From Eutreptiella sp. 'Long Island Sound 2002' (taxonomy: Eukaryota > Protista > Euglenida): a stretch of 64,000 nucleotides of DNA. Made by a program: the position numbers and the translations under genes. Below the pieces are notes generated by a model. That model was not told the origin of the DNA, searched no databases, and worked only from the letters and a program-made list of their open reading frames with translations. Positions 17,700 to 48,290 of this stretch are shown in pieces; positions within the stretch are counted from its first letter, which is position 1; each line of letters starts with the position of its first letter. The stretch lies in assembly GCA_964036045.1 (NCBI GenBank), contig OZ038379.1, positions 3,100,001 to 3,164,000 of the forward strand. Reading direction: 5' to 3'.

Positions 17700-18030
17700 C
17701 GCGTTCAACTCCCACGCACTGCGGGCCGCCGAGCCGCAGGAGTTGGCCCTCGGTCCCTGGCCACAGCGCCCCGACCAGGGTTGTCGTTCATCCCCCAACC
17801 CACCTACTGCGGGCCGCTGAGCCGCAGGAGTTGGCCCTCGGTCCCGGGCCACAGCGCCCCGACCAGGGTCGTCTTTCATCTCCCAACCCACCTACTGCAG
17901 GTCACCGAGCCGCAGAAGTTGGCCCTTGGTCCCCGGGCACAGCGCCCCGCCCAGGGTCGTCGTTCATCGCCCAACCCACCTACTGCAGGCCACTGAGCCG
18001 CAGAAGTTTGCCCTTGGTCCCCGGCCGCCG
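17700..18030 (+). repeat. 88-bp tandem repeat (~4 units) upstream of the helicase relic
   Basis: CCCAACC anchor at 17794, 17882, 17970 (88-bp period). Confidence 0.9.
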
Positions 18031-18078
18031 CGCCTCGACCTGGAAAACATGCCGAACACCAGCCGCAAAGGCCCTTCG

Positions 18079-18366
18079 CAGGGCAAAGGCCAAGGCCCTC
18101 CGCAGGGCAAAGGCCAAGGCCCTCCGCAAGGCAAAGGCCAAGGCCCTCAGCAGGGCAAAGGCAAAGGCCCTTCGCAAGGCAAAGGCCAAGGCCCTGCGCA
18201 AGGCAAAGGCCAAGCCCCTCCGCAAGGCAAAGGCCAAGGCCCTCCGCAGGGCAAAGGCCAAGCCCCTCCGCAAGGCAAAAGCGGAGGCCCTCCGCAGGGC
18301 AAAGGTCAAGGCCCTCCGCAAGGCAAAGGCGGAGGCCCTCCGCAGGGCAAAGGTCAAGGCCCTCCG
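18079..18366 (+). repeat. 24-bp tandem repeat x12, probably once coding (QGKGQGPP)n
   Basis: 12 units of CAGGGCAAAGGCCAAGGCCCTCCG; CAG/CAA and GGC/GGT variants are synonymous in the QGKG frame. Confidence 0.92.
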
Positions 18367-18389
18367 CCGGCCAAAGACAAGGCCCTTTG

Positions 18390-20820
18390 GTGACACCCTC
18401 TTCCACGTGGACTATGACATCGACACAAACCCAATAGAGGGATTCACCACCTGTTGGGCCGATCGCGACACGTATGTGCAGAAGGCATCCCTTGTGCACA
18501 CTGTCCGTGAGTGTGCCGCCGCTCGGAAGTGGGCATGGGAGCAATATGCCATTAGGAACCTGTGCTTCGAGAAGGCACAGCGGTAGAAGGAGGACAAGAA
18601 TGGCAACATGGTGCTCATAACAGAGTGGGTTGCTGAGATTGAAGTTTGGGGCAACTATGATCTGACCAATGGGCATTTCATCCATGCATGGGACATGGAT
18701 CGGCCACACTTGGGCGACCACATCGCACTGGCACCGGACTTCATTGGCAAGGTGCATGGTGATGGCACCTTTGGCACCATGGTGACCATAGTCTGTTCGA
18801 ACAAACCGCCCATTGTGCAGGAGCACAAGTATTGGTGCTGTGTCCTGCCCGATGAAGCAGCGCTCCGGTCGTTGCGCGACGAGATACGGACGGGGAAGGC
18901 ATGGAACACGTTGCTCAATGCCACTCGGCAAGAACCACATGTGGCTGCCAGCCTCCCTGACGAGGACTAGCAGATCCTACGCCACCTTGTGGCACATCAT
19001 AACTTGAACCCCTCCCAAGCCTTGGCTGTCCGGCAATGTCTGGATGACGGCGCTGTTGTCTCCTCCATGACTTGTGGAGCCGGCACAGGGAAGTTGGATT
19101 GGTGGCTTGCGTCAAGGCAGTGATGTGGCAGCAGGGTCACTTCGACCCATGCATCCCGGATCTGAAGAAGCCAGGTTTCGTACACACCGGCAGGAAAGGG
19201 GGGGGTGGGGGCACTTTTGACGGTTTCCCCCCTCGGGCATGCATCCGAGTCACTGCCCCGACCAATGCACAGGTTGACAACTTGATGCGGCGGGTGATCC
19301 AGTCGGCTGACCAAGATCCTACATTCAAGCAAGAAGTTCTGAAGGATCACTCAGCACCTTGGATGCGGCTATGTGCCGCAAGGGGCTAAACCCCCACAGA
19401 TTTGCTACCCTACAACCAGCCAACAGTGGAAGTGTCGCTTGCTGATCATCCGGCGTGCAATGGCACATTAGCATGTGCCCTCAACAGCTGCCGCGGCATC
19501 CCCACAAAACATGCACTGTGCCCCAAAAGCGGCCAAGTCCAGACCCAATGGGATGCTGTGCCTCGAGGACTCATCCACAACGCTGAATGCAAGCCAAGTT
19601 TGTGGCTTGCCGGGGGGGCCCCCCAAGCAGCAACTTTCGCCTTGTAGCCGCCATCCCTGTTGTCGCAAACACAACCCGGTCAACTGCGCCCATACAGTGC
19701 CATCACTCTTTTGGCAACGCACATCAGTAAAATGACGTCTAACCAACTTGCTTGGCCACAGAAAGAGCACTTTACCAACGTCGATGTGCTTAGCGACGAA
19801 GGAACCCCAATGCAATATGGTGACTCACAGCGCTTCACCACAAGTATTGTGTTGCAGTTTATTCTGTACCGTACAAGGTGTACCGCTTGTGTCCCGACCC
19901 AGCAGTTCCGCATGGCCCCGCCCTTGGCAATGGTGGTGCGTGGACTGTTCACTGGGGAGTCGTTGGGCTGGTACCCCCCTTCCTCCCCTGCACTACCCCC
20001 CCCCCCCCCGTGTTGGGAGGTCAACACATCCGCATCGTCAGCACAGATAATCCGGATGGGAGACGTGAGCTGACACGGTATGGGATGTCAGAGGAGCGGG
20101 TGCAGGTCCTTAGGAACCAGATTATGAGAGCATGAGACTCCCTTGTCATGGACGAGGACATGCGCCGCCAAGGGAACCTGGGCAGGGATGAGGCTTGTGC
20201 TGCACTTTTTGGAGCATGCATACAGTGCAAATGCGTACCCCCCCAACTTAGTGGCAATCGTCACCACACACTATGCACAGATGCTATGGCTGCCGCACTC
20301 TGTGTGGGTTGTGGGGCACAAACTGCAAGGGGATCAGGGATATGAGTGTGTGCAGGTAATCGCCACCCTGGACCGGTACCAGGGTTGGCAGGCCCCTGTT
20401 GTCCTTGCCCCCTTGGTGTCCTCGGAGCCAAGGATCATGAAGGACGTGGTGCGGGCACACACACTAATCTGCAGGGCCCAGTCTTGGCTCCACTTCTTTT
20501 TGGGCCCTTTCTAGGCTAGGATGAGTCCCCCCTGGCTGCTTGTTGGCTGAATGGGTTGAGGGTGATGGCCGACCAACTGCAGCAAGGAGGAACCCAGGAG
20601 GAAGTACAGACGATGCGGCTTCCAGGGGTGATGCACAAGCAACCTACCCTTGCCAAATCAGAGGCGGGTGTAATTTACAAGTTTAAAGGGCCAGGAGGCA
20701 ACGGATACTGGGCTCGCATACGCCGCCGTGTCACAGGCGCATGGTCATCACCACATAGTTCAGTGTTTTTCCTCGCTGCACTGCAGCGCAGACCAGTTCT
20801 GTACCATCCCGCAGCAACCT
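18390..20820 (+). pseudogene. Degenerate intronless SF1B helicase of the UPF1/DNA2/SETX type (AAA_11 + AAA_12)
   Basis: Motifs in order across in-frame stops and frameshifts: LNPSQALAV (Q motif), GAGTGK (Walker A), VTAPTNAQVDNL (Ia), GQLRPY (III), QQFRMAP (IV), VAIVTTHYAQ, ATLDRYQG (V), RAHTLICRAQ (VI). ORFs 17831-18586 and 18608-18970 share a frame; 19072, 19402 and 19660 share a frame. Confidence 0.85.
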
Positions 20821-23070
20821 GAAAATCCAATAAACGTGGCGTACCAAAATGAAACTTTTTGGCAAAAATATGGAACATCCCCCCCTCAAATTGTCGCCTA
20901 ATGCCTTCCCGGGACCCTGAAGGGGGTGCTGCAATAATTTGACAGAAAGTCTTCAGTTTAATTTTGAGATAATGTGTCGACAAGTTTCAGCGCATTCCGT
21001 TGTGAAAGCACAGAGGTCTGACGCCATGCCATACCACACCATGCCAAGCCAAGACCGCCATGCCTTGGCTTGACAAGACGAGGCGAGCGAGCGCGCGCGC
21101 GGGGGCGGAGGGGGGTGCAATGGCAGTGTGGGTGAGTGATGGCAGTGGTCCAAAGTGAAAATTCCAACGGGTAGGGGCAAAGGTGCCACTTTACGAAGGC
21201 ACGCGTACAGCCGAGGCAACTGTCCCGCAGCAACCTGAAAATCCAATAAACGTGGCGTACCAAAATGAAAGTTTTTGCAAAAATATGGAACATCCCCCCT
21301 CTAAATTGTCGCCCAATGCCTTCCCGGGACCCTGAGTGGGGTACTGCAATAATTTGACAGAACGTCTTCATTTTAAGGTTGGGATATTGTGTCGACAAGT
21401 TTGAGCGCATTGCAAGATGAAAGCACCTAGGTCTGACGCCAAGCCATACCATACCATGCCAAGCCAAGACCGCCATGCCTTGGCTTGACAAGACGAGGCG
21501 AGCGAGCGCGCGCGGGGGGGCGGAGGGGCGGAGGGGGGTGCAATGGCAGTGTGGGTGAGTGATGGCAGTGGTCCAAAGTGAAAATTCCAACGGGTAGGGG
21601 CAAAGGTGCCACTTTACGAAGGCACGCGTACAGCCGAGGCAACCATCCTGCAGCAACCTGAAAATCCAATAAACGTGGAGTACCAAAATGAAACTTTCTT
21701 GCAAAAATATGGAACATCCCCCCTCTAAATTGTCGCCTAATGCCCTCCCGGGACCCTGAAGGGGGTGCTGCAATAATTTGACAGAAAGTCATCAGTTTAA
21801 GTTTCAGATAATGTGTCGACAAGTTTCAGCGCATTCCATTGAGAAGGCACAGAGGTCTGACGCCAAGCCATACCACACCATGCCAAGCCAAGACCGCCAT
21901 GCCTTGGCTTGACAAGACGAGGCGAGCGAGCGCGCGCGCGGGGGCGGAGGGGGGTGCAATGGCAGTGTGGGTGAGTGATGGCAGTGGTCCAAAGTGAAAA
22001 TTCCAACGGGTAGGGGCAAAGGTGCCACTTTACGAAGGCACGCGTACAGCCGAGGCAACTGTCCCGCAGCAACCTGAAAATCCAATAAACGTGGCGTACC
22101 AAAATGAAACTTTCTTGCAAAAATATGGAACATCCCCCCCTCAAATTGTCGCCTAATGCCTTCCCGGCACCCTGAAGGCGGTGCCGCAATAAAGTGACAG
22201 AAAGTCATCAATTTAAGTTTCAGATAATGTGTCGACAAGTTTCAGCGCATTCCGTTGTGAAAGCACAGAGGTCTGACGCCAAGCCATACCATACCATGCC
22301 AAGCCAAGACCGCCATGCCTTGGCTTGACGAGATGAGGTGAGCGAGCGCGCGGGGGGGGGCGGAGGGGCGGAGGGGGGTGCAATGGCAGTGTGGGTGAGT
22401 GATGGCAGTGGTCCAAAGTGAAAATTCCAACGGGTAGGGGCAAAGGTGCCACTTTACGAAGGCACGCGTACAGCCGAGGCAACCGTCCCGCAGCAACCTG
22501 AAAATCCAATAAACGTGGCGTACCAAAATGAAACTTTTTGCAAAAATATGGAACATCCCCCCTCTAAATTGTCGCCTAATGCCTTCCCCGGCACCCTGAA
22601 GACGTGCCGCAATAATTTGACAGAACGTCTTCATTTTAAGGTTGAGATATTGTGTCGACAATTTTTAGCGCTTTCCATTATGAAAGCACAGAGGTCTGAC
22701 GCCATGCCATACCACACCATGCCAAGCCAAGACCGCCATGCCTTGGCTTGACGAGATGAGGTGAGCGAGCGCGCGCGCGGGGGCGGAGGGGGGTGCAATG
22801 GCAGTGTGGGTGAGTGATGGCAGTGGTCCAAAGTGAAAATTCCAACGGGTAGGGGCAAAGGTGCCACTTTACGAAGGCACGCGTACAGCCGAGGCAACCG
22901 TCCCGCAGCAACCTGAAAATCCAATAAACGTGGCGTACCAAAATGAAACTTTTTGCAAAAATATGGAACATCCCCCCTCTAAATTGTCGCCTAATGCCTT
23001 CTCGGGACCCTGAATGGGGTACTGCAATAATTTGACAGAAAGTCTTCAGTTTAAGGTTGGGATATTGTGT
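20805..23070. repeat. ~420-bp tandem array, 5 full units plus a partial, alternating short/long units
   Basis: GCAGCAACCTGAAAATCC anchor at 20811, 21227, 21650, 22066, 22490, 22905 (spacings 416, 423, 416, 424, 415). Confidence 0.97.
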
Positions 23071-24929
23071 CTTTAGTAACCACGCGAATCGTTCCCTGTT
23101 GTGGATAACCAAAATTCACAATGAAACGTGCAACTGACCCTTAGGCCCTTCCATCTAGAAGCGCAACTAGCTGTGCACTGTTGTGAGCTGTAGAAGTATT
23201 ATATAGAGTCTCAAAGAGACCTTTCGTTTTGCCTTCAGATACCTCGCAATTTGCTTACCTTAACCTATAAAAGAACATGTGCACTTGAAGTTCATGTCCT
23301 TGCGTTGTTGACCATAGCAGCACATTTCAGGAGCTGAAGCCCACCCGGCTTTTCAAGTCAGGATTGGTCATTGGGCGCTAACGTGCACGAGTGCTGTGTA
23401 CCATGCATACCAGCCATCCCCACATGCACAAGAAAAGATGCCCCAAAAAACAACCAACGTCATGAACAACCCACACACCCCATTCCCACAAGGCACAGCC
23501 CGATTGCGTGACACACCAAAGCCGCAAACACCACCGCTCCACGCACCGTGCCTCCACGCAGAACAATCTCACCCCGGAGGTCCACACATGAAAGCCCAAC
23601 GCACCAGAGGCCTATGCACTACAACCTTACATGCCACAACCCCCCCACCACAATCATGCGGCATTTGATATGTGAGCTATAGCTCATTGTCCATGTTTGG
23701 TTAAAATCCTGCGCAGCAAAAGACCGCAGTCTGGGTCATGGCTTGTGTTGTGGCAAACGTCACCATACATGCAAATGGAAAGGCAAACTCAAAGAGGCAT
23801 CATCCGGGGGGTGTATTGGCTCCATTGCCTCGGTCTGCTTTGCATCAGCGGGGACTGTTTGAGGATAACTGGGTCATTGAAATGCACGGGCAGTGCGGTC
23901 ATGTCACCCGTTTGGGACAATGGGTCATGTATTTGAGGTGGGTGTTGTTCAGCGCATCGCCGGCTGCAGGTCAGCCCCGCCACACAGCGCAAGGAGCCCC
24001 TCAGGGACCCCATCCTGTTTGGAAGCAGGGCCGCTGACCTAACGAGGCCAGCAAACTGGGGGAGGGTCCCTGTTCAAGGCGAGGGATGCTGGTACATTCG
24101 GGTGGGTGGCCCTTCGTCATGGCAGTCGTGCGCCGCCCCCTCCACTGACTAACAAACCGGTCCTGCGGACCACGGGCAGCGCATATAACGTCATCCGGAC
24201 GCATGGCTGAGCTGGACACAACAACGGCGGCCTTTCTACGGGCCCAGACAGACAATTGCCGTGGAAGAGGGAGCTGTGCCCCAGGCGACTGGCACAATCC
24301 ATCCCCACCACTGTCGCACGGTGCAGGTAGTGCATGTCAAATATGTTGACTGAGAATCCGGCATCTCAGCCCTCTACCCATATCCGTGTGATCTTACAGG
24401 CGCTCTCTATGTTTCTCCGTTTCTTGTCACGGGCTTGGGAGGACCGCAGCAAATTTGGGGAGGGTGGGGGTTCAACCGCATAAACACCAGAAGGTCGCAC
24501 GCCGCTGAGGAGCCACCTCCAGTGGCCCACCAATACGGTCCCCAGCAACATGGAGCTGTGCCTTGAGGCAATGGGACTGGTGAGACTGAATTGTGCACTA
24601 ACGGGGGCCAATACAGCAACGCCGGTCCTCAAACGAACCCTCCCCGACACTCTGCAAGAGCACTGCGGCCGTTCATAGGAGAGAAACAGCGGACGGGCCA
24701 CTGCAAAAACGGGATGCCCCATGTTTTTGGGCCTGTCTGAACACATACAAAACAGCACCATTGGGGGAATGTTTGCCCGGCGCGCTACTTTTCTATTTAC
24801 TATCCCGAGTTCAGCCCCAGATTTACCCTCTCCTGGAGAAGCCCCCCAAGTAGACCACATTGCACTGCACACCTTCCCTACAAAACAAGTTGCATAATAA
24901 AGCAATATCTGTGAATTCAGCAACTCCAA

Positions 24930-27287: not shown

Positions 27288-28445
27288 TGCAGCGGCAGTT
27301 GGAGTTGGACGGATGCGGCTGGGGCGTAACTGACTTGCTGTTGGGTGTGGGACCTCCCCGCGCTTCACGCGCAGCCCTGCTGACTGTTAGGGGCCTTTGC
27401 GAGACAAACGTGATCGTGCACCGCCACAACGTGGACCGAGTTGCTTGAGATGTCGGGAGGGATGTATCAGAAGAGAGGAAGGGGGGGGCGGATTTGGCAG
27501 CCAAATGTGTGTGTACCCAAAATGGCCCGACAAGATTTTCCCAATGGTAAATTTCGGTTTTTTCCACTGTGGTCACTTTGGTCGGGGGGGGGGGGGGGTG
27601 AGGTTCCAGGGGGGGGGGGGGGCATTCTAAGATGTCCCTGGACGTCGGGAAATGCCAGTTTCAAGCCAATCAGAAAAAAAAGCCCCGAATGTGCAGAATG
27701 GGCCAGGCCTACTCTCTACATGACCCTGAGCTACGGCTTGGAGTGAATGCTCGGTTCCTTCATGAACTCCTTCATTCGAAGCAGGTCGATGTCGTCGGGC
27801 ATCTGCCCTTTGACCCCGGGCATGGTGAGGGAGGACCAGCCTCTCTCGCGGATCATGCGCAGCCACTGGTTGTACACCACGTCCTTGACCTCGGCACTGG
27901 GCCCCACTTTGTCGTCCAGGGCCTTCAGCACTTGCCGGTTTCTCTGCTCCAAGTGCCTCATGGTGAACTCGTGCACGGCGCGCTCCACGGCGAGCTGCTT
28001 GGCCGACAGCGCGACGGCGGGGGCGACTTTGGGCTTCGTGTCGCGGATGGTCACATCCACCTTGACGTCCTCGGTGGGCTGCTGCTTCGGCACCGTGTGC
28101 TTCGGCGTCTCATGGAACACGAGGCGCCGGGTCATCTGCTTCCAAGCATCTCTTCCATGCTTCGAGGCCATATCCCAGATACAGTGGCTATGGCAAAGGA
28201 ACAAAGAGCGGGGGGGGCTTGCCCGGGCGCCGGGAAAAGCGGTCACAACAGTGCCTGGCGTCGCAGGGTCTCCCCAGAGACTGAAGGCGGCATCAGTCGC
28301 AGTGGGTTGTGTCGCTCGTTTGACATGCACCAACTAGGTTGGCGCCACATGCACACACACCCATGTACGTCCAATCGTCAACTCCAGAAGACATTTCCCC
28401 ATTCAACACATTCAGGCACGTAGATAGGCAGGCACATGCGCATAC
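27288..28445. repeat. Block A (1158 bp), left copy of the direct duplication flanking the retroelement
   Basis: Starts TGCAGCGGCAGTTGG, ends GCACATGCGCATAC; matches 36319-37477; ORF-track translations identical; only difference noticed is one G in a homopolymer. Confidence 0.97.
27731..28150 (-). CDS. Putative host exon or gene fragment of unknown function (left copy)
   Basis: QMTRRLVFHETPKH...MKEFMKEPSIHSKP shows a strong G/C third-position bias (gtc, gcc, aag, ctg) unlike its flanks; helical, charged sequence; boundaries uncertain. Confidence 0.5.
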   Translation of the reverse strand, partial: DAWKQMTRRLVFHETPKHTVPKQQPTEDVKVDVTIRDTKPKVAPAVALSAKQLAVERAVHEFTMRHLEQRNRQVLKALDDKVGPSAEVKDVVYNQWLRMIRERGWSSLTMPGVKGQMPDDIDLLRMKEFMKEPSIHSKP

Positions 28446-28879
28446 GCTGCAAGGGGCGAGCACAAGTACAAAAACTCCTCAGACAAACACGGCCATGCCC
28501 ATGAGGCTAGTGCAAACAAACAATGCAACAGTAGACAGGATGTTCTGGTGGCCCAAAGTCGGGCTGATTGCCCTCGGCACGCAAATACATAATGACAACA
28601 ACGACATTTCATCATCGGTAGGCATCTGTGGTCCCGGGCACACACCATATTCGACCCCTGGCGCCCATGGATCCTGTCCACTCTCGTTTTGTGTGGCACC
28701 AGACCCGCCTTTCGTTTCCATACCAAACTCAACCTGATTTATGTCAAAAATACACTGACTATGCGTTCACACAGGGCCTTACGTCCAGTATATGTGTCGC
28801 TCGCCACAGAGCACTCACACTGGCACCACAAATCAATGGTACTGCACAGCATGCGCAGAAACATCCTGAGATGAAACCA
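28446..28879 (-). repeat. Block B, 3' terminal repeat (pseudo-LTR), 434 bp
   Basis: GCTGCAAGGGGCGAG...GAGATGAAACCA, same as 35885-36318; includes the last 15 codons and stop of ORF2. Confidence 0.96.
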
Positions 28880-31800
28880 CTCCCGAGCCGCTGGTCGCTG
28901 CCGCCCGTTTGCCCTCCCGAACCCACGTGGTAACAGATCCCAGGGAAAACACCTCTAGAAGGTTATACTTCCGCAGAAAGCGTGTGAGACAGGGCAACCA
29001 CCAATGTTTGGGGTAAGAGTGCCAGCCTACGCCCCAGAGGAGGGAGCGAAAATTAGCCTGCACATCTGCAGTGGAACCCGCATACCACAGTGATTTGAGA
29101 AACAGGGACGGCAGCATAGACGCCAGCGTAAAGCTCGCGTTGGCTGAGCGGGCTGGGACCCACCTGAGCCACTCACCCAGCTCAGCGCCCTCAGCGATGT
29201 CCCAGATGACCCCTTTCCTGGTCAAAGAGAAGCCCAGGGGGAGGGGTTTCCATGAACACTCTCCCCAGGACACCCGTAAATCTGTAGGTTCCCATTTCAG
29301 GGGAACTCCATACAAACAGTCCAGGAAATGCTTCGCCGCATGGCGAACGCGAGGGAACAGGGCAGGATGGATGTTCATAAAAATTATGTAGATGTTATCA
29401 CGAAAACGTGAGAAAAGAATGCCTGGGCTGGTGGATATGGGGACAGCCGGGTCGGATGGGCGCGTCGCCCACCCCCACCACCCTCGACGGGCCTCGCTCA
29501 CCACAAAGTCCATGGGATCCAGTTCCCGAAAGAACTCTCGAAGCCGCGCCCTGTCTCGGGGGGGTGCACTCGCAATAACAGTACCCATGCGCCCATCCGG
29601 CGCTCCGTCCCAGAGGGAGGTCACCAGCAGGTCAACCCGCACCCCGTCCACGTCGAGGTACCCGAAGGAGGCATCAGTAGGCCCCCACCACCCTCCGAAC
29701 CCATCAGTACGCAAAGTACTGCTGTGCAAAAAGGGTCGGTCTGTGCTCCCGAGTACCCTGCCCAGTTTCTGTGACCCCCTGCAGGACGGGTGACAAACTT
29801 CGATAGGTTCCCGGACACACAGACGGATATCGGCCAGGGACGCTGGTGCACCCTCCTCACCTTTACGTACTGTCTGATCCCACGTCTTGACAAGACCAGA
29901 CCGGTGCTTACCAAAAATATACTTAAGCTCACGGGCAAGTGCCCAGAGTTCAGCAAGTTGCGCTGACAAATGTCCACCAATCGGGACACCCCGATCGCCT
30001 TGTTTCAGCAATAGCGGGCCCAGCACCAGCCCTGTGTTGTGGTGCAGGTCCCAGGAAACAAAGTCCAGCAATTCCTGCCGGGAGATAACCCTGAAGTCAG
30101 CACTACTCGCTGTACCCAGGCGATCAAGGGCCTTCTCCCCAGACTTATGCAGTGCAAAAAACTCCGCACATCCGCGCCTCTCTCCCTCCAAAAGCTCAAA
30201 CAGTTCATGCAGGGCCGGCACAACATCGCCCTTGGGGATATTCCAGAACATATCCGTCATGTCCGCCTCATCAGGGCGGACACTGGCCCAGACCGGGTTG
30301 AACCTGCCCAAGGACCCCAGTAAATCACGTACTCCTACCATACTCGGCATGCCCAATGTCTGGAACTGCCGGTACACTTCGCTGACAATGAGCTGTAGTG
30401 ATCTGCTCATGAGGCGTGCATACGAGCGCAGGATGTGGAGCTTAAAGGACACAATATCGCGCCATTTAACAATGGCCTGTGCCCCACGTTCAACCGTCTT
30501 CCATTTCAAAATGGAAAAAATCGAGGGCGCACCAAAAAGTGGCCGCTGATGCTGGCGTTGGGGGCCTGGGTCTAAATCTACAGTGTCTCCAGGGGAAGGT
30601 GGAGGTTCCGGGTCGGTATAGACCGAATTAATGTGAGTTGCAGCCCAAGAAAGATCTGCATACCCTTTACGCAGGAGATTGTGATGAATCGCACAGTCCA
30701 CAATCCCATGTGCTTGGGCAGAGGTCAGTGTATCATACACATTCGCTGCTTGGGCAGCAGCTTTGGACTCTGCCACGCCCCACAAAATAAAGCGGTCCCC
30801 TCCCAAGTAGGATCCCACCACATGGTCCTCTTCCAACACCCTGCATGCACCGGACATCCTGTGGAGCTGTTTGTCCCAAATCCCTGCGCGAAAGCGAAGG
30901 TCCCAGATGCGTTTAGAGAGCCCGGAAACATGCTCGCTGCCCAATGTGGGGCACTCCAGTGTATACGCAGAGATGTCCGCAAGACAAAAATTATGCACCC
31001 ATTCAACAATAGGTGCTATATCGTCTCCGGAAAGCAAGGAACTCGCTGACACAGGCGGGTATAGCGCAGAGGAAGAGGACGCAGGGGTCGTGGGGAGCGA
31101 GGGAGGGATTTGGGAGAGGGAGAGAGAGGCAGAAGCCAGAGAGGGAGAGATGCCAGACGCGGAGGGAAGAAAACCCTCTGCGGGTACAGTCATGCGTTGC
31201 AGGGACGTCTGGAACAGCTCCATCTGAGCTGCCAGCACATCTATGGAAGGAATGACGCACTGACGCGCATTGCTGCTGAGGGTATCAGCCCCTTCGTCAC
31301 TGAAAAGACACGCCCATTGTGATCTAGTGCGCAGGACAACATGTCCCAGATCGTTCCGTAGGGCAGGATGCTGTCGCATCAATGCAGCACATGTGCATCG
31401 TCGCCCTTGCCTTCGCGCGAGCTGTCGTTGTATCTCTTGCACTACACGCGGCTGAACTTCAGAGGGTTCTTTGAAGACCCATGCTCGCTGCTGCCCCCCC
31501 ACAAGGAAAGGCGACGCGTCGTAGGTTCCAAGTTTAATACCAGAGACCAGCTCGTCTGCAGTCATGCGAACAGTACGTAAGGCAGCCCCTCCCCTGAATA
31601 CATCTTTAAGTTTATGGGCTTGCAAAGGTAGAACAGACAATGCACGGGAAAGCCATGCCTTGAGGGTTTGCGGTACATCATGCTGCGCAATCTGTGACCT
31701 GAGGCTCCTCTTAATGCCATTGATGGTATGCCTGTGGTAGGTAGGAACCCGTACGATAAAACGACGTTGCAATTCAACACCCCACGTGCGTTTCACTACA

Positions 31801-33824
31801 CCCTGGACTGCGCGAAAGAAGGAATCAAACAGGCGGCCTGGGATTTTCCCCAATGAAGAGGTTAGTAGATCAAGCAGATCCTCTACTCCCTGGTCGGTAT
31901 CCTTACTGCTCCTCACTTTCCAGAGTACATCGTTCACACGCTGGGACAGTGTTTTGGCTTCAGATGAAGTCTCCTCCCGCAGGCTCCACCGCCACCGCAG
32001 TTCGCCTATCCCCCACCCTCTCGCTGGGTCAATTTGATTCAGGGTGGGGGCCAGTACACTGTCAAAGTGCGACTCGACATTAAACGCTTCTCGTGGCGGG
32101 TCCACCTTCTGCAGCAGTACCATCGAGGCTTGGTGACCCCCCACTCTGGCTAGCACTCTAGACAGGGAGGGTGTTTTTCCAAACCCCAACTGACATCTCA
32201 TTCGTCTGTGTCTGTTGCCCAGGAACAGGTTCCTGAGTGATTTGGCTCTGGACAGATGTTCCTTATAGCGCTCCAGAGGTGCCCTCGGACCCTGCAGAAA
32301 ACCAACTTGACCTACATACGGCAGGAAGGCTCCCACCATAACATAGATCCATGTGTCTTCTATCGTCAGTGGTGTATCCAAGGGGAGGCGTGACAGGCGC
32401 ACAGCTCGTCTCAGTCGGGCATCAGGGCAGTCCTTGAGCAGCTGGTTGCTGCGCATAAGAGACTCCGCAACCATGTCCCATTTCACACATCGGGATTTTA
32501 GAAGTTGTGCACGCACATCGGCTTCTTCATCCCAGGCCGCCCAGAATTCTGAAAGCAAGGCCAGTTGCTCTTCCCTGGTAGGAAAGGGTGAATCTGAACC
32601 CACCAGACCCGGTAGAGGCCCGTACCATGCTCCTGAGCCTGTGGACTTAATGATGTTCTTCACAGCCACACCAAACCTCCTGGCATCCACACCGCACCCT
32701 ACTTCTGCCGTACCTCCATCTATCAACCACCATTCCCATATACCCTTCTGCCAGTACCAGACTTCTTGGCCTGTTGCGCTCTGGTCGAACGCACGAACCT
32801 TTAATCTGGATTGTGCACCGAATTGTACAGCACGGCCGTCATTGGCCCATTTTTCTAAAACACCATTCCATCCACGATTGTGTTCCCTGTTATGTAAAAC
32901 GCACAGTCGAAAATTCGGATCGTGTAGGCGATCCTCCACCTTTGCAGAGAATTCAAAGGGTGCAACATCGGATCTCAGGAAAAACTTCCTCGTCGAGTCG
33001 GACATTGCAAAAACATTATCTAGAACACCGTCAAAGTATAGACACTCCGGAATATCCGTTGCATACATCGGCAGGCCTGCAGACCAGGGGCTCCCAAATA
33101 GCATGCAGTTGATTCCCAGAACGTCACGCAGAAAATCTTCTGCTCCGCCTGTCAATCTACATCCTAAGCCTCGTCTACTATGCATAATTTCCACAAGGAT
33201 AATGGCGTATTCGCAAAACTGCTGGACTTCAGCCGGCGTCACTTCAGACCATGTCCTCACTCCATTGGTCGCCGCATAGCCGTCCCATAGAGGTCGCAGG
33301 GATCTGTTCCTGGCCAAGACGCTGGCAAATGTATCAACAGTAGCGCATTCTTGTAGAAACCGCAAAATGGGAAGACATACACTCTTCTGACCCGCAAACA
33401 GATTTTCTGATTGAGTAGAGGACATATCGGCTCTATCACTATCTTCCGATGGATCCACACTCCGTTGCGTCGAAGAAGAGGAAGAGGAGAGTGGGGAGAA
33501 TGGGTCAGAGTCCAGAGTAGCGTTGCTCTGTAACCCTGCCTCTAAGCAAACAGCCTCTGATGGTGCCTGGGGATCTGCTCGTCCACTGTGATTGTCGCTC
33601 ATGTAGGCAATACAGGTCCCAGGAGCCATCGGAGGTTCGTCGATCTCAGTAGTAGGCATTTCTAGTATTCGCTGATCGTCACAAATAGTGGAGCGCAGAA
33701 AGGTAGCGGCTTGCTCCAGGTCATTGATAGCTCGCGCCCTCTCCAAATCTTCTCGTGCGTGTTGTAGAAGAAGTTCACGCAGTGTCGGAGAGAGCACAGA
33801 AAACGAAGTCCCTGTACTCGTCAT
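28833..33824 (-). CDS. ORF2 polyprotein, 1663 aa: putative MTase-like domain, GIY-YIG endonuclease, reverse transcriptase
   Basis: GIY-YIG: WIY-x8-YVG, ERYKEH, VESHF, PTLN (aa ~492-596). CTC...GHVV linker. RT: DMTDMFWNIP (D1188), GVPIGGHLSAQLA (aa 1279), RFRDN (D1476). No stops over 5 kb. Confidence 0.93.
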   Translation of the reverse strand: MTSTGTSFSVLSPTLRELLLQHAREDLERARAINDLEQAATFLRSTICDDQRILEMPTTEIDEPPMAPGTCIAYMSDNHSGRADPQAPSEAVCLEAGLQSNATLDSDPFSPLSSSSSSTQRSVDPSEDSDRADMSSTQSENLFAGQKSVCLPILRFLQECATVDTFASVLARNRSLRPLWDGYAATNGVRTWSEVTPAEVQQFCEYAIILVEIMHSRRGLGCRLTGGAEDFLRDVLGINCMLFGSPWSAGLPMYATDIPECLYFDGVLDNVFAMSDSTRKFFLRSDVAPFEFSAKVEDRLHDPNFRLCVLHNREHNRGWNGVLEKWANDGRAVQFGAQSRLKVRAFDQSATGQEVWYWQKGIWEWWLIDGGTAEVGCGVDARRFGVAVKNIIKSTGSGAWYGPLPGLVGSDSPFPTREEQLALLSEFWAAWDEEADVRAQLLKSRCVKWDMVAESLMRSNQLLKDCPDARLRRAVRLSRLPLDTPLTIEDTWIYVMVGAFLPYVGQVGFLQGPRAPLERYKEHLSRAKSLRNLFLGNRHRRMRCQLGFGKTPSLSRVLARVGGHQASMVLLQKVDPPREAFNVESHFDSVLAPTLNQIDPARGWGIGELRWRWSLREETSSEAKTLSQRVNDVLWKVRSSKDTDQGVEDLLDLLTSSLGKIPGRLFDSFFRAVQGVVKRTWGVELQRRFIVRVPTYHRHTINGIKRSLRSQIAQHDVPQTLKAWLSRALSVLPLQAHKLKDVFRGGAALRTVRMTADELVSGIKLGTYDASPFLVGGQQRAWVFKEPSEVQPRVVQEIQRQLARRQGRRCTCAALMRQHPALRNDLGHVVLRTRSQWACLFSDEGADTLSSNARQCVIPSIDVLAAQMELFQTSLQRMTVPAEGFLPSASGISPSLASASLSLSQIPPSLPTTPASSSSALYPPVSASSLLSGDDIAPIVEWVHNFCLADISAYTLECPTLGSEHVSGLSKRIWDLRFRAGIWDKQLHRMSGACRVLEEDHVVGSYLGGDRFILWGVAESKAAAQAANVYDTLTSAQAHGIVDCAIHHNLLRKGYADLSWAATHINSVYTDPEPPPSPGDTVDLDPGPQRQHQRPLFGAPSIFSILKWKTVERGAQAIVKWRDIVSFKLHILRSYARLMSRSLQLIVSEVYRQFQTLGMPSMVGVRDLLGSLGRFNPVWASVRPDEADMTDMFWNIPKGDVVPALHELFELLEGERRGCAEFFALHKSGEKALDRLGTASSADFRVISRQELLDFVSWDLHHNTGLVLGPLLLKQGDRGVPIGGHLSAQLAELWALARELKYIFGKHRSGLVKTWDQTVRKGEEGAPASLADIRLCVREPIEVCHPSCRGSQKLGRVLGSTDRPFLHSSTLRTDGFGGWWGPTDASFGYLDVDGVRVDLLVTSLWDGAPDGRMGTVIASAPPRDRARLREFFRELDPMDFVVSEARRGWWGWATRPSDPAVPISTSPGILFSRFRDNIYIIFMNIHPALFPRVRHAAKHFLDCLYGVPLKWEPTDLRVSWGECSWKPLPLGFSLTRKGVIWDIAEGAELGEWLRWVPARSANASFTLASMLPSLFLKSLWYAGSTADVQANFRSLLWGVGWHSYPKHWWLPCLTRFLRKYNLLEVFSLGSVTTWVREGKRAAATSGSGVVSSQDVSAHAVQYH

Positions 33825-35764
33825 GGTGCTGCAGTCCCAGAGGTAGAAGCAGTTCCATCAGTGAGGCAAGGGCGTTTCAGAGGTTTACCCGCGTTCAACT
33901 CGTCCGCTGCTACGTGTGCAGCTTCTTCCCAAAAGAAGACCTTGTCGAAGGTGTTCATTTCCCACGTGTCAAAAGGGCATGCCTCAGCACTCTCCAGAGC
34001 CGGTTCCAGCGGGTTCTGGATGGTCACAGCGCTGGAAGGTCCCAGTACCAAGTGCCCCGCAGGTCGCAGTCCAACAGACCTCACTGTGACGACCTGGTGA
34101 GTCCTCTCTGGGGGTCCATCCGACACTGCAGCAGGCCCCGGCGCTAGGACCACCATATGCAGTCCCTGACCAGTATGGCTAAGGGCGTGCACTCCTTCGT
34201 TCCTCCTCTTAATTGCGGGCGGCGTCAGCAAAGAACCCCTGCATTGCAGGAGCGCCGCCATATCGACCATTTTCCACTCCTGTGCAGGACGCCACCCAAG
34301 CTGCCATTCCCTCAGCTCATTCGCTTTAGGGGTAGCGCCCTGATTTTCTGTCGCAGTCGGAGCGTCCGAGTGGTCCATCATCGTCAAGTCTTCAGAAAAG
34401 GCGGACACTCGGTTGTCATCCGATGAGTTGGAAATAGAAATGCGTCCTGAATGTAGAGGCATGTCAGCGCCCATAGTAAGCAGACTCTCAGCCGTGGGTG
34501 CTGCAGGTCCCGACTTGGTGTCCTCGAGGGTCGCAAGCCGCATCTTCTCCTCGATCTGGGGATCGAGACTCGGGGGCAGCTCAGCCAGGGCCGCTTCTTT
34601 TGCCTGCTGCATCAGGGCATTCACCTCGTCCGGGGAGACACCGCCGACCTTGACCAGAAGTGTGCCCATCAAACTCTGGGAGACACTGGTGGAGCGCTTC
34701 AGATCCGTCACAGACTGATCGATACGGCCCAGCTGCTGCCAAATGTGTTTGCGGTCCTCGGTCAGGGTTTTTAACGACTCTTCAGCATCCTGCACTCGGG
34801 CGTTCAGGGCGTGCGCGGGAAGGCCGACGATAGCGGGCTGCATTCTCGAGCTGGGCGGTGTTTTCGCTAGCGATAGGCTCGGAGTGGAGGTCGACGGGTT
34901 CAGGGCGATCTGAAAGGAGTTGTTCGGTCCGTTCAGTGCAGTGGCCACCAGATCTGTAGCAGGGTCACCCGCGCGATCCCGTTTGCCCCGTTTCGGTTTC
35001 AACTTCTTCTTCCCCTTCCCCTTCGAGGACGAGACGTCACGGGGCTGAAAAGCAAAACCCTGTGCCTGACCAGCAGTGCCTGGTGGTGCAGGCAACGCCA
35101 GCACATTCGAGTCGTTCACTGGTGGCGCACTCGCTGGTAGCAGTGAATGCTGAAAGAACTCAGCAGTAGGCGCGTCCTTCACAGGTTGCGGGGGTGTGGT
35201 CTTCGGATCGGTTCCGTCGTCCCATCGCGGAAGCCCAGTGGCTGCCTCCATCACTGCAGCCAGGAACTCTCGATCCGACATCCGGGGCCACCTGGAAGTA
35301 TCCACCTCCAAATTCTCAGCGATCTGGTACCGGGTGTAGCGCTTCTCCCGTACATCACGCAGAATTTTGTGCCAATAATCACGGTTCGAGGTCCAGCGAT
35401 CAGAGTCAGCCTGGCACCATCTGTGATTCGTTGGAAAATGAACGCCTGAAAGATGTCCAAACTTCTTACAGAGATAGCACGGATTTCCCATTTTGTGTTC
35501 GGCCTTACCCAGCGCTTCAGAGTTGCTGTGGTCCACTTGTTTGAGGTCAAACCGCGGCAAGACGTCGTCAGTGTGGGACCCACCTTGGCGAGGTTCTTTA
35601 GTCGGAGAGGATCGCGGAGGAGAACGTCGCTGTTTCCGACTCCCATTTCCTTTCCTCTGTTTTTGCTGCACTTGTTGCCCGTCAGCCATTAGAGAGCGCA
35701 CTGCATGCGCAGTAGCATCGCCAATGAGCTTGGCCATTTTATCGGATGGAACGAAGGAAGACAT
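33821..35764 (-). CDS. ORF1, gag-like protein with CX2CX4HX4H knuckle and coiled coil (first ATG 35764; frame open to 35830)
   Basis: CYLCKKFGHLSGVH; basic N-terminal stretch (KQRKGNGSRKQRR); heptad-like RVQDAEESLKTLTEDRKHIWQQLGRIDQSVTDL; stop overlaps the ORF2 start (ATGA). Confidence 0.85.
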   Translation of the reverse strand: MSSFVPSDKMAKLIGDATAHAVRSLMADGQQVQQKQRKGNGSRKQRRSPPRSSPTKEPRQGGSHTDDVLPRFDLKQVDHSNSEALGKAEHKMGNPCYLCKKFGHLSGVHFPTNHRWCQADSDRWTSNRDYWHKILRDVREKRYTRYQIAENLEVDTSRWPRMSDREFLAAVMEAATGLPRWDDGTDPKTTPPQPVKDAPTAEFFQHSLLPASAPPVNDSNVLALPAPPGTAGQAQGFAFQPRDVSSSKGKGKKKLKPKRGKRDRAGDPATDLVATALNGPNNSFQIALNPSTSTPSLSLAKTPPSSRMQPAIVGLPAHALNARVQDAEESLKTLTEDRKHIWQQLGRIDQSVTDLKRSTSVSQSLMGTLLVKVGGVSPDEVNALMQQAKEAALAELPPSLDPQIEEKMRLATLEDTKSGPAAPTAESLLTMGADMPLHSGRISISNSSDDNRVSAFSEDLTMMDHSDAPTATENQGATPKANELREWQLGWRPAQEWKMVDMAALLQCRGSLLTPPAIKRRNEGVHALSHTGQGLHMVVLAPGPAAVSDGPPERTHQVVTVRSVGLRPAGHLVLGPSSAVTIQNPLEPALESAEACPFDTWEMNTFDKVFFWEEAAHVAADELNAGKPLKRPCLTDGTASTSGTAAP

Positions 35765-35884
35765 CGAAGGAGCTTGAACGATATCGAGGTAATACCGCGA
35801 ATGTCGAAAGTGAACTTGTACTTGAATCAACGGAGGACAATGGAAGGTACACGCGTTTCAGTCGCACGCGTGTTAGAGCCACAG

Positions 35885-36318
35885 GCTGCAAGGGGCGAGC
35901 ACAAGTACAAAAACTCCTCAGACAAACACGGCCATGCCCATGAGGCTAGTGCAAACAAACAATGCAACAGTAGACAGGATGTTCTGGTGGCCCAAAGTCG
36001 GGCTGATTGCCCTCGGCACGCAAATACATAATGACAACAACGACATTTCATCATCGGTAGGCATCTGTGGTCCCGGGCACACACCATATTCGACCCCTGG
36101 CGCCCATGGATCCTGTCCACTCTCGTTTTGTGTGGCACCAGACCCGCCTTTCGTTTCCATACCAAACTCAACCTGATTTATGTCAAAAATACACTGACTA
36201 TGCGTTCACACAGGGCCTTACGTCCAGTATATGTGTCGCTCGCCACAGAGCACTCACACTGGCACCACAAATCAATGGTACTGCACAGCATGCGCAGAAA
36301 CATCCTGAGATGAAACCA
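35885..36318 (-). repeat. Block B', 5' terminal repeat (pseudo-LTR), 434 bp
   Basis: Same sequence as 28446-28879; abuts block A' directly. Confidence 0.96.
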
Positions 36319-37477
36319 TGCAGCGGCAGTTGGAGTTGGACGGATGCGGCTGGGGCGTAACTGACTTGCTGTTGGGTGTGGGACCTCCCCGCGCTTCACG
36401 CGCAGCCCTGCTGACTGTTAGGGGCCTTTGCGAGACAAACGTGATCGTGCACCGCCACAACGTGGACCGAGTTGCTTGAGATGTCGGGAGGGATGTATCA
36501 GAAGAGAGGAAGGGGGGGGCGGATTTGGCAGCCAAATGTGTGTGTACCCAAAATGGCCCGACAAGATTTTCCCAATGGTAAATTTCGGTTTTTTCCACTG
36601 TGGTCACTTTGGTCGGGGGGGGGGGGGGGGTGAGGTTCCAGGGGGGGGGGGGGGCATTCTAAGATGTCCCTGGACGTCGGGAAATGCCAGTTTCAAGCCA
36701 ATCAGAAAAAAAAGCCCCGAATGTGCAGAATGGGCCAGGCCTACTCTCTACATGACCCTGAGCTACGGCTTGGAGTGAATGCTCGGTTCCTTCATGAACT
36801 CCTTCATTCGAAGCAGGTCGATGTCGTCGGGCATCTGCCCTTTGACCCCGGGCATGGTGAGGGAGGACCAGCCTCTCTCGCGGATCATGCGCAGCCACTG
36901 GTTGTACACCACGTCCTTGACCTCGGCACTGGGCCCCACTTTGTCGTCCAGGGCCTTCAGCACTTGCCGGTTTCTCTGCTCCAAGTGCCTCATGGTGAAC
37001 TCGTGCACGGCGCGCTCCACGGCGAGCTGCTTGGCCGACAGCGCGACGGCGGGGGCGACTTTGGGCTTCGTGTCGCGGATGGTCACATCCACCTTGACGT
37101 CCTCGGTGGGCTGCTGCTTCGGCACCGTGTGCTTCGGCGTCTCATGGAACACGAGGCGCCGGGTCATCTGCTTCCAAGCATCTCTTCCATGCTTCGAGGC
37201 CATATCCCAGATACAGTGGCTATGGCAAAGGAACAAAGAGCGGGGGGGGCTTGCCCGGGCGCCGGGAAAAGCGGTCACAACAGTGCCTGGCGTCGCAGGG
37301 TCTCCCCAGAGACTGAAGGCGGCATCAGTCGCAGTGGGTTGTGTCGCTCGTTTGACATGCACCAACTAGGTTGGCGCCACATGCACACACACCCATGTAC
37401 GTCCAATCGTCAACTCCAGAAGACATTTCCCCATTCAACACATTCAGGCACGTAGATAGGCAGGCACATGCGCATAC
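36319..37477. repeat. Block A' (1159 bp), right copy of the flanking duplication
   Basis: Matches 27288-28445; continues without a break into the CAGACAGG-rich tract at 37478+. Confidence 0.97.
36763..37182 (-). CDS. Second copy of the putative host exon
   Basis: Translation identical to the 27731-28333 ORF. Confidence 0.5.
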   Translation of the reverse strand, partial: DAWKQMTRRLVFHETPKHTVPKQQPTEDVKVDVTIRDTKPKVAPAVALSAKQLAVERAVHEFTMRHLEQRNRQVLKALDDKVGPSAEVKDVVYNQWLRMIRERGWSSLTMPGVKGQMPDDIDLLRMKEFMKEPSIHSKP

Positions 37478-37640
37478 ATCAGCCGATAGGTACATAGACG
37501 GGCAGACAGGCACATAGGTATGCACCGGCACATAGACAGGCCGGCAGGCACATACAGGCACACAGACCACGTAGACAGGCAGTAGACAGGCAGACAGGCA
37601 GACGGACAGGACCAGACAGCCACACAGACAGGACTGGGGA
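37478..37640. repeat. Low-complexity CAGACAGGCA-like tract
   Basis: Degenerate short repeats visible in sequence. Confidence 0.8.
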
Positions 37641-44906: not shown

Positions 44907-47899
44907 TGCTCTCCTCACCCCGGATTGAAAAACGCCGAAAAGTGAAATAATATGAGTTAAGATTCACCAAAGAGTATAAAGTTGCAAAACTACTCCATGG
45001 TTAGGGTAGGGCACAAGTAGGCACAAAGTCAGGACGGATGCGGTGACACCGCCGGATAAAGGGATGCTGCACAACGCATCGTATGCAGTTCAAGATTGTC
45101 AACAAAGTGAAGGAAAAAATCCGGATATCAGGAAGGTTCAAACTGTGAAATGCAGCCATTTTAGCCTGAAAACCAGCTTGGTCGCGCCATTACTACCTCA
45201 ACGCATCTTGCGCAGTGTATGGCACCAAGCGTGTGCGAGTCCATGACAGTCGAAATTTAGGTTGAAGGTCAAGTTTCCAGTTATGTATAAGCCCCTTAAA
45301 ACACTTTTTCTATGAAAACTATTCGCACATTGGATGTCACATTAGGTTGTGTATTGGTGTGTGCTTTGGTTTGGCGTCCAAAAGATGCGCAGCAGCATCC
45401 AAGCTAGAAATTAAAGTTTCAATGGTTCAAACTTGTAAAACTTTAAAAAATCGAGAGATATAGATTCAAAATTTGCCATAGGATGAGGCCACATCGACAT
45501 CCGTCGCTTGTGCACACAGACAAAAAATAGAGATCTTCAAGTTACAAGCTTATATTTCCGGAAGAAATAAAGTATGATTGGTCCGTTTTGGCCTTATCGT
45601 AGATTATACTACACCCGGAGCCCCGCCTTCGTTTTTGGAAATAAATGGCGACCGAAACACGAACAACGTAGATGGTGCCAACCGATTCTGGCCTTATTTA
45701 ACTAGCTGTCAGACTTTCACCGGGCCGAGCCAACCCCTGAACCAGTCGGTGTGTAAAGATGATTTGAAAACTGTCAGACTTTCGGCGCTTCACAAAATAG
45801 ACTGCTTTTTTTCCTCGTGGAATATCACTTCTTATTTGCCGAAAGTAGTAAGTCTGCAACGGAGGAATGTCGTGGTTTGCAAGTGCTAAGAACTGTTTTG
45901 TAGTGTTCACATGTTCCTCATAATATGGTTAGTATCGATTTTGGCTTGTTTCGAGTTTTCGACATGTGCCATTGTGCTTGCAACCAAAACTTGATGTCTC
46001 TTATCTTTTAGCTTGTTAGCATGTAAAAAGAGTTTTGTCGTGAACTGAAGCGCCACGAAGAATTTGCATGCTTTTTGGTATGTCCGAAAGGAATCGGTTA
46101 TAATTTTGAATGGCTCTTGTTTTGCATGATTCGCAGTCGTGGTTCCAATTGTAGTTTTTTAAAAACGTCGCAAATTTTTCAACGCGTGTTGAAGTGTTGG
46201 AGCATCATACGTTCGAAAATATTTACAATGCCGTTTACCCAGAGGGACACCTAGAGGCACTGAAGGCGCCACAGCTTTACCTACACGTACTTGAGGATAG
46301 TTAAATAGTTTTGGGCACCATGGGGTAAGTGTGGGTTGGATACAGAGTGCTGCGAAAAGTTGTTGGAGTAGAAATAGTTTACGTGTAAGACTTCATAAAG
46401 CCACCAAGCGACCAGGTAACCTAGGATGCGGCTCTGGAAGAAGAAAAAAGAAGAAAAAATAGCGCCGAAGGTCAGAAAAATAAAATCGACCATTCGAAAG
46501 TGATTGACAAGAACGGACTAAAGTTGTATGATGACCAAGAAAATGTCCTAGAAGCTCAAAATGAGCGAATCATTTCGTGTAGCCTTGGATCACCCAAAGT
46601 ACACAGATGGTGTTAGACTTAAAGGAACAGCCTACTGTTCATTCATGACACTCTTTTGTGCACTCTTCCCAATTGCAAGTTTTAAGGGGGGTGTTTGCAC
46701 GGTGCGCGCCTAACGCGCTACTTTTGTATTTAACCATCCCGGCTTTAATCTCACATTTACTCTACCTCATAGACTCCTAGCCGCCGCAGTTAAGCAGAGT
46801 GGACTGCAAACCTTCCGTACAAAGCACGTTGCATCAGTGTAAATAGCTAGACTCAACATCAATGTATGTCCATCATGTATTGCCGAATAAACAACTTGCT
46901 ACCTACAAGTGTGGACATCAATACATTTGCCCGATTTCCTTAATAGCACCGAAAGGTTGAATCAACGACAAAAGGTGGTTAGATTCCTCGTAGGTACCGA
47001 GACAACCGAAACGGAGCTCAGGATTCACGCTCTTGGTTGCACCTGGAGACATCATGTCACTACTACCAACAAGATTGCCTGATGCCATAGTGCAGATGGC
47101 CTAGCACTTTCCAATCGTGCTGTTGTAGTAGACTTTACACTAGGTGAAGATCATGGATTGCTACCCATTTGATGGCATGGGAACTTGCACTGTGCAACTG
47201 ATGCACAAGACGCCTTGCTTGTGGACAAGGGCTGGAGTCCCGTAGATTTTTGAACATGACCGAAACAAATTCAAAACAAGTATCTGTCCGTGTGTGCACC
47301 ATGGTCGGCCTATGTCGACCCACCATCTGAAAACATTTGAAAACAGCAACCGTTGAGCATGAAATGATGAGCCAAATTGTGCAGCCACCGAATCATGCTT
47401 GAAAACTCCCTCTCAGAGGCAAAACCACTCGTCTTTGTGCACCAAATAATGCTCGTAAACAAAGTCGGGCCCAGGAATCTGGAACTTGGGATTGACTGGG
47501 CAGGCCGCGAACGCCGCAAAAAATGAGCACTTAATGTAAGAATGGATGCGTTGGGATGGCTCATTTGTTGATCACTATGGCTGTCGGACACTGCAGCATA
47601 GGCATCTAGGTGGCACGTTATATTGTACAGAAAACGAGCAGAAAAAACCTAGCTAGATCACTCTGTGTCTCGGTTTTTTCCGCAGCAGTTGAGCGTAGGC
47701 ACGTTTTTGGGTCAGTAGCTTGGTGGTCAGACTCGAAATAAAAATGGGCCTCTGATGCACTATCAGAACTTGGAAAAAAACATGTGTAATAAGATGGGAA
47801 CTAGGATTCTTATCTGTCTGCCACTTAACCGTACACTTAGAACCCCCCACTGCGACCACCTTACGCCAATGCAAATAACCTTTGAAATTATACCCCTGG

Positions 47900-48290
47900 G
47901 CTCTAGCCAAAGTGGCTCAGTAGCCTACTTCACAAAATCTAGCAATATGTATGATCCATTCAAATGACCTCTCTGCATAGGTCTCCCAGCGAAGGAAGAC
48001 CCCTGTTCTCCGAACAGATGAAACTGTGTACATAGCCTCTCGCCAAAGTGGTTGGGTACCCTACTTTACAACATTCGGATAGTACCTGTGGTCCTTTGCG
48101 ATGAACTTTGTGCAAAGGTCTCCAAGCCAAGGAAGACCCCTGTTCTATGAAGAGATGAAATCGCGCACGTGGGCTTTGGCCAAAGTGGTTGAGTACCCTA
48201 CTTTACAACGTTGAGATAATACGTGTGATCCTTTGTGATGAACTCTCTACATAGGTCCTCCGGCTTCAAAAAAGATCCCTGCTCTTGGCA
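47900..48290. repeat. Degenerate ~138-bp tandem repeat x3
   Basis: CCAAAGTGG and AGGTCTCC/AGGTCCTCC anchors recur at ~135-138 bp. Confidence 0.75.

Follow-up and report, generated by a model that had tools for sequence, protein, structure and literature searches.

Among described retroelements, those that most resemble the one reported here are the Naiad and Chlamys groups of Penelope-like elements, in which an endonuclease (EN), a CxC linker and a telomerase-like reverse transcriptase (RT) follow one another in that order (PMC8557442). Their target-site duplications (TSDs) are mostly not discernible (PMC8557442), whereas at the loci described below clear TSDs of 40, 361, 540 and 1158 bp are seen. 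We analysed a 64,000-nucleotide stretch of contig OZ038379.1 from Eutreptiella sp. 'Long Island Sound 2002' (positions 3,100,001 to 3,164,000; hereafter the window), in which an intact retrotransposon of 7.9 kb lies between two copies, A and A', of a segment of 1158 bp. We believe that this element is probably a recent, intact insertion of a very divergent Penelope-like lineage with an N-terminal EN, sitting between two copies of its own target.

Duplications of this size are not new for retroelements, the precedent being the long interspersed nuclear element (LINE) Dualen. De novo insertions of Dualen-4b_cRei in Chlamydomonas mutation-accumulation lines are flanked by duplications with a median length of 900 bp, which the authors read as the longest known TSDs, produced by distant nicks; the previous record was the 126 bp of R9 (PMC9977147). 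The sequence-only reading of our locus had assumed that retroelement TSDs normally stay below about 30 bp, and in view of these two cases that limit is not firm. At our locus, as at Dualen insertions (PMC9977147), a copy of the duplicated host DNA lies directly against each end of the element. The Dualen LINE differs in carrying both restriction-like (RLE) and apurinic/apyrimidinic (APE) endonucleases, a pair that has been credited with the long TSDs (PMC9977147), while the present element has neither. The same study describes its Chlamys insertions as short and reports no duplications of this kind at them (PMC9977147). The R9 LINEs of bdelloid rotifers (Gladyshev and Arkhipova 2009, cited in PMC9977147) share with our element an unusually long TSD, yet theirs has a fixed length at a specific site, in contrast to the 0 to 1158 bp at dispersed sites found here. 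Our literature search found no report of kilobase TSDs in Penelope-like elements.

Layout and junctions of the duplicated segment

Read from left to right, the window shows a left flank (L), A, a terminal repeat B, the body of the element, a second terminal repeat B', A' and a right flank (R). B and B' are pseudo-long terminal repeats (pseudo-LTRs), and B contains the end of the second open reading frame (ORF2):

27288-28445, no strand: A, left copy of the duplicated host segment, 1158 bp
28446-28879, minus strand: B, 3' terminal repeat (pseudo-LTR), 434 bp, with the last 45 nt of ORF2 and its stop inside
28880-35884, minus strand: core (body) of the element, 7005 bp
35885-36318, minus strand: B', 5' pseudo-LTR, 434 bp, 100% identical to B
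36319-37477, no strand: A', right copy of the duplicated host segment, 1159 bp
roughly 37445-37635, no strand: degenerate CA/GA-rich low-complexity tract (CAGGCA/GACAGG type), from the end of A' into R

On its sense strand the element ends at 28446 with ...CTTGCAGC, and A lies downstream of this 3' end. Self-BLAST, MAFFT and direct string comparison agree on the order A-B-core-B'-A' and on its base-precise junctions, as the sequence-only reading had described them. They also bear out its statement that the two copies differ by one G in a homopolymer and nowhere else: the run has 15 Gs in A (27584) and 16 in A' (36615). Similarity between A and A' ends exactly at all four outer and inner junctions, with the single exception of a 5-nt likeness, AAACC, which occurs just left of both copies, near the junction (MAFFT and string comparison). 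This shared AAACC may reflect microhomology at the 5' join, or chance; microhomology at 5' joins has been reported for LINEs and for Penelope (PMC3846280). Self-BLAST found no third copy of A within the window. Nested perfect repeats of 1.16 kb and 0.43 kb cannot arise by chance.

The low-complexity tract marks which copy of A stands in its original context. It sets in about 30 bp short of A's end, is interrupted by B at the left copy and runs on for about 160 bp beyond A' only, again as had been noticed from the letters. Because the tract continues from A' into R, A' and R together are native DNA.

Flanking repeats at other copies and in relatives

We compared the window with ten other loci of the same family (L002-L011; 93.9-99.8% identical). 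All relatives used here come from ENA assembly ERZ25074135, except for one short JGI contig. At none of the ten loci does A lie on either side of the element, and we conclude from this absence that A is host DNA. An A found next to further copies was what the sequence-only reading had named as refuting a TSD. Inside A, and hence duplicated with it, lies an ORF of 200 codons (27731-28333 and 36763-37365, both minus strand; 146 amino acids (aa) from the first ATG); a protein database search matched only the ORF itself, and the ORFs in A gave no meaningful Pfam family.

The nested direct repeats and the ORF inside A could also suggest that A belongs to the element, either within composite or split terminal repeats of the DIRS/Ngaro type or as the LTR of an outer element. 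This has next to no probability, since three full-length copies (L004, L005 and L009) consist of B-core-B without A, and the element carries no recombinase, integrase or other Pfam domain. The split-direct-repeat order of DIRS elements also differs from A-B...B-A. A DIRS/Ngaro split-repeat element is ruled out by the missing recombinase domain and by the absence of A at the ten other copies.

The remaining copies show how the family inserts. L002, L003, L007 and L010 are 5'-truncated at differing points and each ends in B, and L011 contains the same truncated copy as L010. L006, whose 5' end falls outside the locus, has its ORF2 split by one nested insertion; L008 lacks its 3' part and shows one internal deletion. 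The element's 3' end does not vary (it is the same in L002-L005, L007 and L009-L011), while the 5' repeat measures 434 bp in the window and L008, 431 in L004, 430 in L005 and 145 in L009. In L011 another body begins immediately after the truncated copy and its B, forming a long partial tandem. Because the length of the 5' repeat varies and because of this tandem, B is a pseudo-LTR and not an LTR.

L010 (5752-8412, from ENA) and L011 (9-2706, from JGI metagenome 3300040751) share both the truncation point and the same 8 flanking bases. After the 3' repeat, the JGI contig goes on with another body start and the ENA contig with unique DNA. This difference could be due to a tandem that one of them lost through recombination between the repeats, or to polymorphism.

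Flanking repeats were scored at the eight copies with both ends visible, the window copy included. Direct repeats that abut the element measure 1158 bp in the window, about 40 bp at L002 and 2 bp at L004; none are detectable at L003, L005, L007, L009 and L010. The constant 3' end, the many 5'-truncated copies and the flanking repeats that vary from copy to copy point to the behaviour of a target-primed retroelement. With LTR retrotransposons and endogenous retroviruses the element shares direct terminal repeats around gag-like and pol-like ORFs. LTR elements have LTRs of fixed length and a fixed short TSD. An LTR retrotransposon or retrovirus is ruled out here by the 5'-truncated copies, by the variable 5' repeat and TSD, and by the lack of integrase, protease and RNase H Pfam domains.

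Long flanking repeats were found at two relatives as well. L012, a member of a sister family (ORF2 63% identical in aa), has the same nested order as the window: a flanking segment T, a pseudo-LTR, a body, a pseudo-LTR and T'. T and T' are about 540 bp long (L012:330-869 and 13208-13747) and 98.2% identical, with 10 mismatches in 543; the pseudo-LTRs B2 and B2' have 347 bp and are 99.1% identical, and the body holds one nested insertion. T is absent beside the sister-family copies L013 and L001. Because its flanks are 98.2% identical, L012 is the older event, and its sequence indicates an independent one. The second case lies within L004, where a distant, 5'-truncated relative (L004:15643-17006; 29% identical over the RT) sits between perfect repeats of 361 bp:

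L004:7413-7512 plus 15380-15642: upstream copy of the 361-bp repeat, in two parts
L004:17007-17367: downstream copy of the 361-bp repeat

The L004 copy of the present family inserted later into one of these repeat copies, with its 2-bp TSD. The downstream repeat begins with an (ACAAC)n tract. CA-rich tracts adjoin the 3' junctions of two elements, the window copy and this relative; none were seen at the other copies.

That the nested layout recurs at L012 and a long flank at L004 makes a long TSD far likelier than a one-off rearrangement. The recurrence bears on two rearrangements in particular. In the first, two homologues, one with the element (E) to the right of A (L-A-E-R) and one with it to the left (L-E-A-R), would have exchanged by unequal crossing-over within E to give L-A-E-A-R. 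Such an exchange yields the observed order exactly without extra element copies, and it is feasible in a young family whose copies are 99.7-99.8% identical. However, it requires two insertions in the same orientation 1158 bp apart plus the exchange, all of them recent, and it predicts allelic differences between A and A', which are identical apart from the one homopolymer length. The same coincidence would be needed three times in about a dozen insertions (window, L012 and L004), and we therefore hold crossing-over to be quite improbable. In the second, the element would have landed at the junction of a tandem duplication A-A that was already there. No specific point favours this, and it demands a hit at one position in more than 1 kb, repeated at L012 and at L004; A and A' are moreover as identical as B and B'. 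We regard it as extremely improbable.

L012 also helps to judge whether the second A was created during assembly, for instance by a haplotype switch inside the element or by a wrongly resolved repeat graph, so that A was traversed twice. The contig names resemble, in our impression, the style of a long-read metagenome assembler, the element exists in many near-identical copies, and a homopolymer length, the sole difference between A and A', is a typical error of reads or polishing. On the other hand, reads must exist for both of the new junctions, A|B and B'|A', a unit of 10.2 kb is expected to fit in single long reads, and ten other copies came out of the same assembler with unique flanks. 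The diverged flanks of L012 are impossible to obtain from a double traversal of one segment. Taken together, these points leave an artefact improbable.

At the 3' junctions of L002, L003, L007, L009 and L012, the bases CT or CTG often come next after the element end. These are the first body bases after the 5' repeat (window 35882-35884), and the pattern looks as if templates had ended 0-4 nt inside a following tandem unit.

A further way to obtain two copies of A would be 3' transduction combined with a partial tandem: a read-through RNA would have brought A along from beside a source copy, and A' would come from a second, 5'-truncated template. Partial tandems and the capture of host DNA are both known from Penelope-like elements (PMC8557442, PMC3846280), and 3' ends in this family extend 0-4 nt into a following unit. 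Nevertheless, truncation of the upstream copy would need to fall precisely on the B|A boundary, no other copy has A, and the tract that continues from A' marks A'-R as native. We consider this route very improbable.

For the TSD itself, three observations count on the other side. The window's 1158 bp is the extreme of the distribution, most copies having no TSD. An empty site with a single A was not found: 23-24-mers of A gave no match in either of two JGI metagenome scans. Penelope TSDs have been published as short (8-10 bp) or absent (PMC3846280). Nonetheless, the proposal that A is a duplicated target site fits the survey well: A is private to this locus, flank lengths range from undetectable through 2 and about 40 bp within the family, and long cases recur at L012 and L004. 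Three insertions out of about a dozen examined have a TSD of at least 361 bp, and the data support the conclusion that this group of elements makes unusually long and variable target-site duplications.

How the duplication may have arisen

The simplest course of events would begin with a nick in the plus strand of the window, inside the CA/GA-rich tract, between 28445 (the last base of A) and the present 37478. The free 3' end of A would prime reverse transcription of an RNA bearing B at both ends. The opposite strand would be opened 1158 nt off, at the L|A boundary, and filling in both single-stranded stretches of A would give L-A-[B-core-B']-A'-R. A staggered break of this kind is supported by the exact coincidence of both ends of A and A', as it predicts.

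The order of the nicks is inferred, as is the second-strand cleavage about 1.2 kb away that the sequence-only reading proposed, and the element's endonuclease may or may not have made the second break. A single nick followed by a microhomology-guided template switch in repair or replication would lead to an identical product. As far as the letters themselves go, an element nuclease, a pre-existing nick and a replicative template switch would all be compatible with the distant break.

The length of a TSD records the distance between the openings of the two target strands, and the second opening is the least understood step. TSDs that run from 0 to 1158 bp within a family imply that the element endonuclease does not set the site of the second break. 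The kilobase TSDs described for Dualen LINEs are here extended to a Penelope-like element without the dual endonucleases of Dualen, and the locus presents retroelement insertion itself as a route to kilobase tandem duplications of host DNA. Layouts like this one will be wrongly annotated as LTR elements with composite repeats. The proteins are invisible to Pfam-based annotation.

Proteins, class of the element and surroundings

Motifs and structure models lead us to reclassify the element, from a generic or LTR-like retroelement to, most likely, a very divergent Chlamys-like Penelope element, with B as a Penelope-type pseudo-LTR. Its coding features all lie on the minus strand:

33821-35764, minus strand: gag-like ORF1 with a CX2CX4HX4H zinc knuckle; 647 aa when counted from the first ATG
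28833-33824, minus strand: ORF2, 1663 aa, intact; polyprotein with endonuclease, CxC linker and RT-like parts
32025-32357, minus strand: putative GIY-YIG-type endonuclease core, ORF2 residues about 490-600
31305-31409, minus strand: CxC linker motif, ORF2 residues about 806-840 (C810-x-C812, N824, H828, R832)
28875-30437, minus strand: RT-like domain, ORF2 residues about 1130-1650, from an AlphaFold2 (AF2) model and motif conservation

The stop of ORF1 overlaps the start of ORF2 (ATGA). ORF1 is matched by a 647-aa gene call in L004 and by a relative in L001 that is 55% identical. For ORF2, two 1663-aa versions on other contigs (P0010 and P0011) fall in the same 90%-identity cluster, and an exhaustive HMMER search gave 734 relatives, unnamed and mostly fragments. 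A profile search with the family profile A3 matched only unnamed ENA proteins.

In the N-terminal half of ORF2, the conserved set Y494, Y503-V-G505, R514, H523, E584 and N596 reaches column shares of 85-100% among 20-26 relatives. We take this Y/YxG/R/H/E/N set to be the catalytic set of GIY-YIG nucleases. The predicted secondary-structure order of the region is beta-beta-alpha-alpha-beta-alpha. It is motifs and predicted topology that suggest an endonuclease. The CxC motif, with conserved N824, H828 and R832, is placed between EN and RT by evidence at the level of motifs.

The RT-like domain was modelled with AF2 from the C-terminal 614 aa of ORF2 and an alignment of 69 relatives (pLDDT 85.5). 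The best Foldseek matches of the model are the telomerase RTs of Candida, Tetrahymena and yeast (E 7e-5 to 7e-3, probability 0.99-1.0), followed by a weaker match to human telomerase RT (E 0.014, probability 0.75) and then by group II intron RT; the top telomerase RTs reach E 7e-5 to 9e-4 at probability 1.0, but their TM-scores are low, at about 0.3. Motif A can be placed at about D1188, motif B at 1279-1294 and motif C in an F-R-D-N beta-hairpin at 1474-1477, giving spacings of 91 aa from A to B and about 180 aa from B to C.

The likeness to Chlamys and Naiad extends over many features. Shared with both are the EN-CxC-RT order, with a putative EN here, the long A-B spacing of an RT that in our element is probably telomerase-like, the pseudo-LTRs, frequent 5' truncation and partial tandems (here L011) and the lack of a canonical hammerhead ribozyme (PMC8557442). 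Insertion in CA-rich simple repeats, known from both groups (PMC8557442), may have a parallel at the window copy and the L004 relative. In our case, Rfam gave nothing at gathering score across the window and nothing at E<=1 across B, and no hammerhead ribozyme was found. Shared with Chlamys are a body length within its range of 3.3-8.2 kb and, in our putative GIY-YIG core, the absence of Cys residues, and Chlamys-2_cBra likewise has an upstream ORF with a zinc knuckle (PMC8557442). What sets our element apart is that its RT and EN go undetected by Pfam, PDB sequence search and hhalign, that motif C reads F-R-D-N and that about 180 aa separate motifs B and C. Canonical Penelope elements with a C-terminal EN, such as those of Adineta vaga, resemble ours in their pseudo-LTRs, partial tandems, 5' microhomology and some copies without TSD (PMC3846280). 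They differ in having TSDs of 8-10 bp, the C-terminal position of the EN, hammerhead ribozymes and common inverted pseudo-LTRs (PMC3846280); no inverted pseudo-LTRs were seen here.

Several results speak against placing the element in this class. Pfam searches of ORF1 and ORF2 gave nothing meaningful, and those of all members of profiles A2 and A3 nothing relevant; no Pfam domains of the integrase, protease, RNase H or recombinase kind occur in the element. ORF2 had no match in a PDB sequence search, alone or with profiles A2 and A3, and hhalign found no similarity between the RT profile and the LINE RT from L001. The putative GIY-YIG core had no match to a Pfam hidden Markov model and no significant Foldseek match with a 761-aa N-terminal model; the null Foldseek result is probably due to the multidomain nature of this model (pTM 0.47). 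Standard RTs have Y-x-D-D in motif C. Here it is F-R-D-N, with D in 38 and N in 38 of the 43 relatives.

This F-R-D-N motif is found family-wide, yet copies 99.7-99.8% alike occur at many sites. Since copies so similar have inserted at many sites, the family has been recently active.

A bolder proposal, which we put forward tentatively and consider rather doubtful, is that the element stands for a retroelement lineage of its own, not yet described, close to the telomerase/Penelope branch. Its RT would combine F-R-D-N with a large insertion between motifs B and C, and it would routinely open the two strands hundreds to more than 1000 bases apart. Each such insertion would then create a tandem segmental duplication and could double an entire small gene; the ORF in A would be such a case.

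The sister-family copy in L001 (seen at L001:13547-21936) is itself a mosaic. Its ORF2 is interrupted by one nested block, in which lie a LINE (Exo_endo_phos and RVT_1) and an ORF that weakly matches a 2OG-Fe(II) oxygenase. One small LTR-type insertion, with repeats of 164 bp, sits in the 5' pseudo-LTR of this copy. We had considered the mosaic repeats of L001 as a further odd case; they resolve to this ordinary LTR-type insertion in the 5' pseudo-LTR.

The window as a whole is very repeat-rich, and ten of its flanking ORFs gave no Pfam match. Nothing points to an origin from a human or an animal virus. A 41-bp satellite (about 84% matches between units) forms a 0.9-kb array at 1275-2220 and a 9.5-kb array at 5659-15231. 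Arrays of 88-bp units at 813-1155 and 17711-18040, which are reverse complements of each other at 83-85% identity, bracket this satellite region. Further tandem arrays lie at 20803-23071, 18068-18386, 47897-48257 and 49985-50292, with units of 415, 24, 137 and 41/123 bp, respectively.

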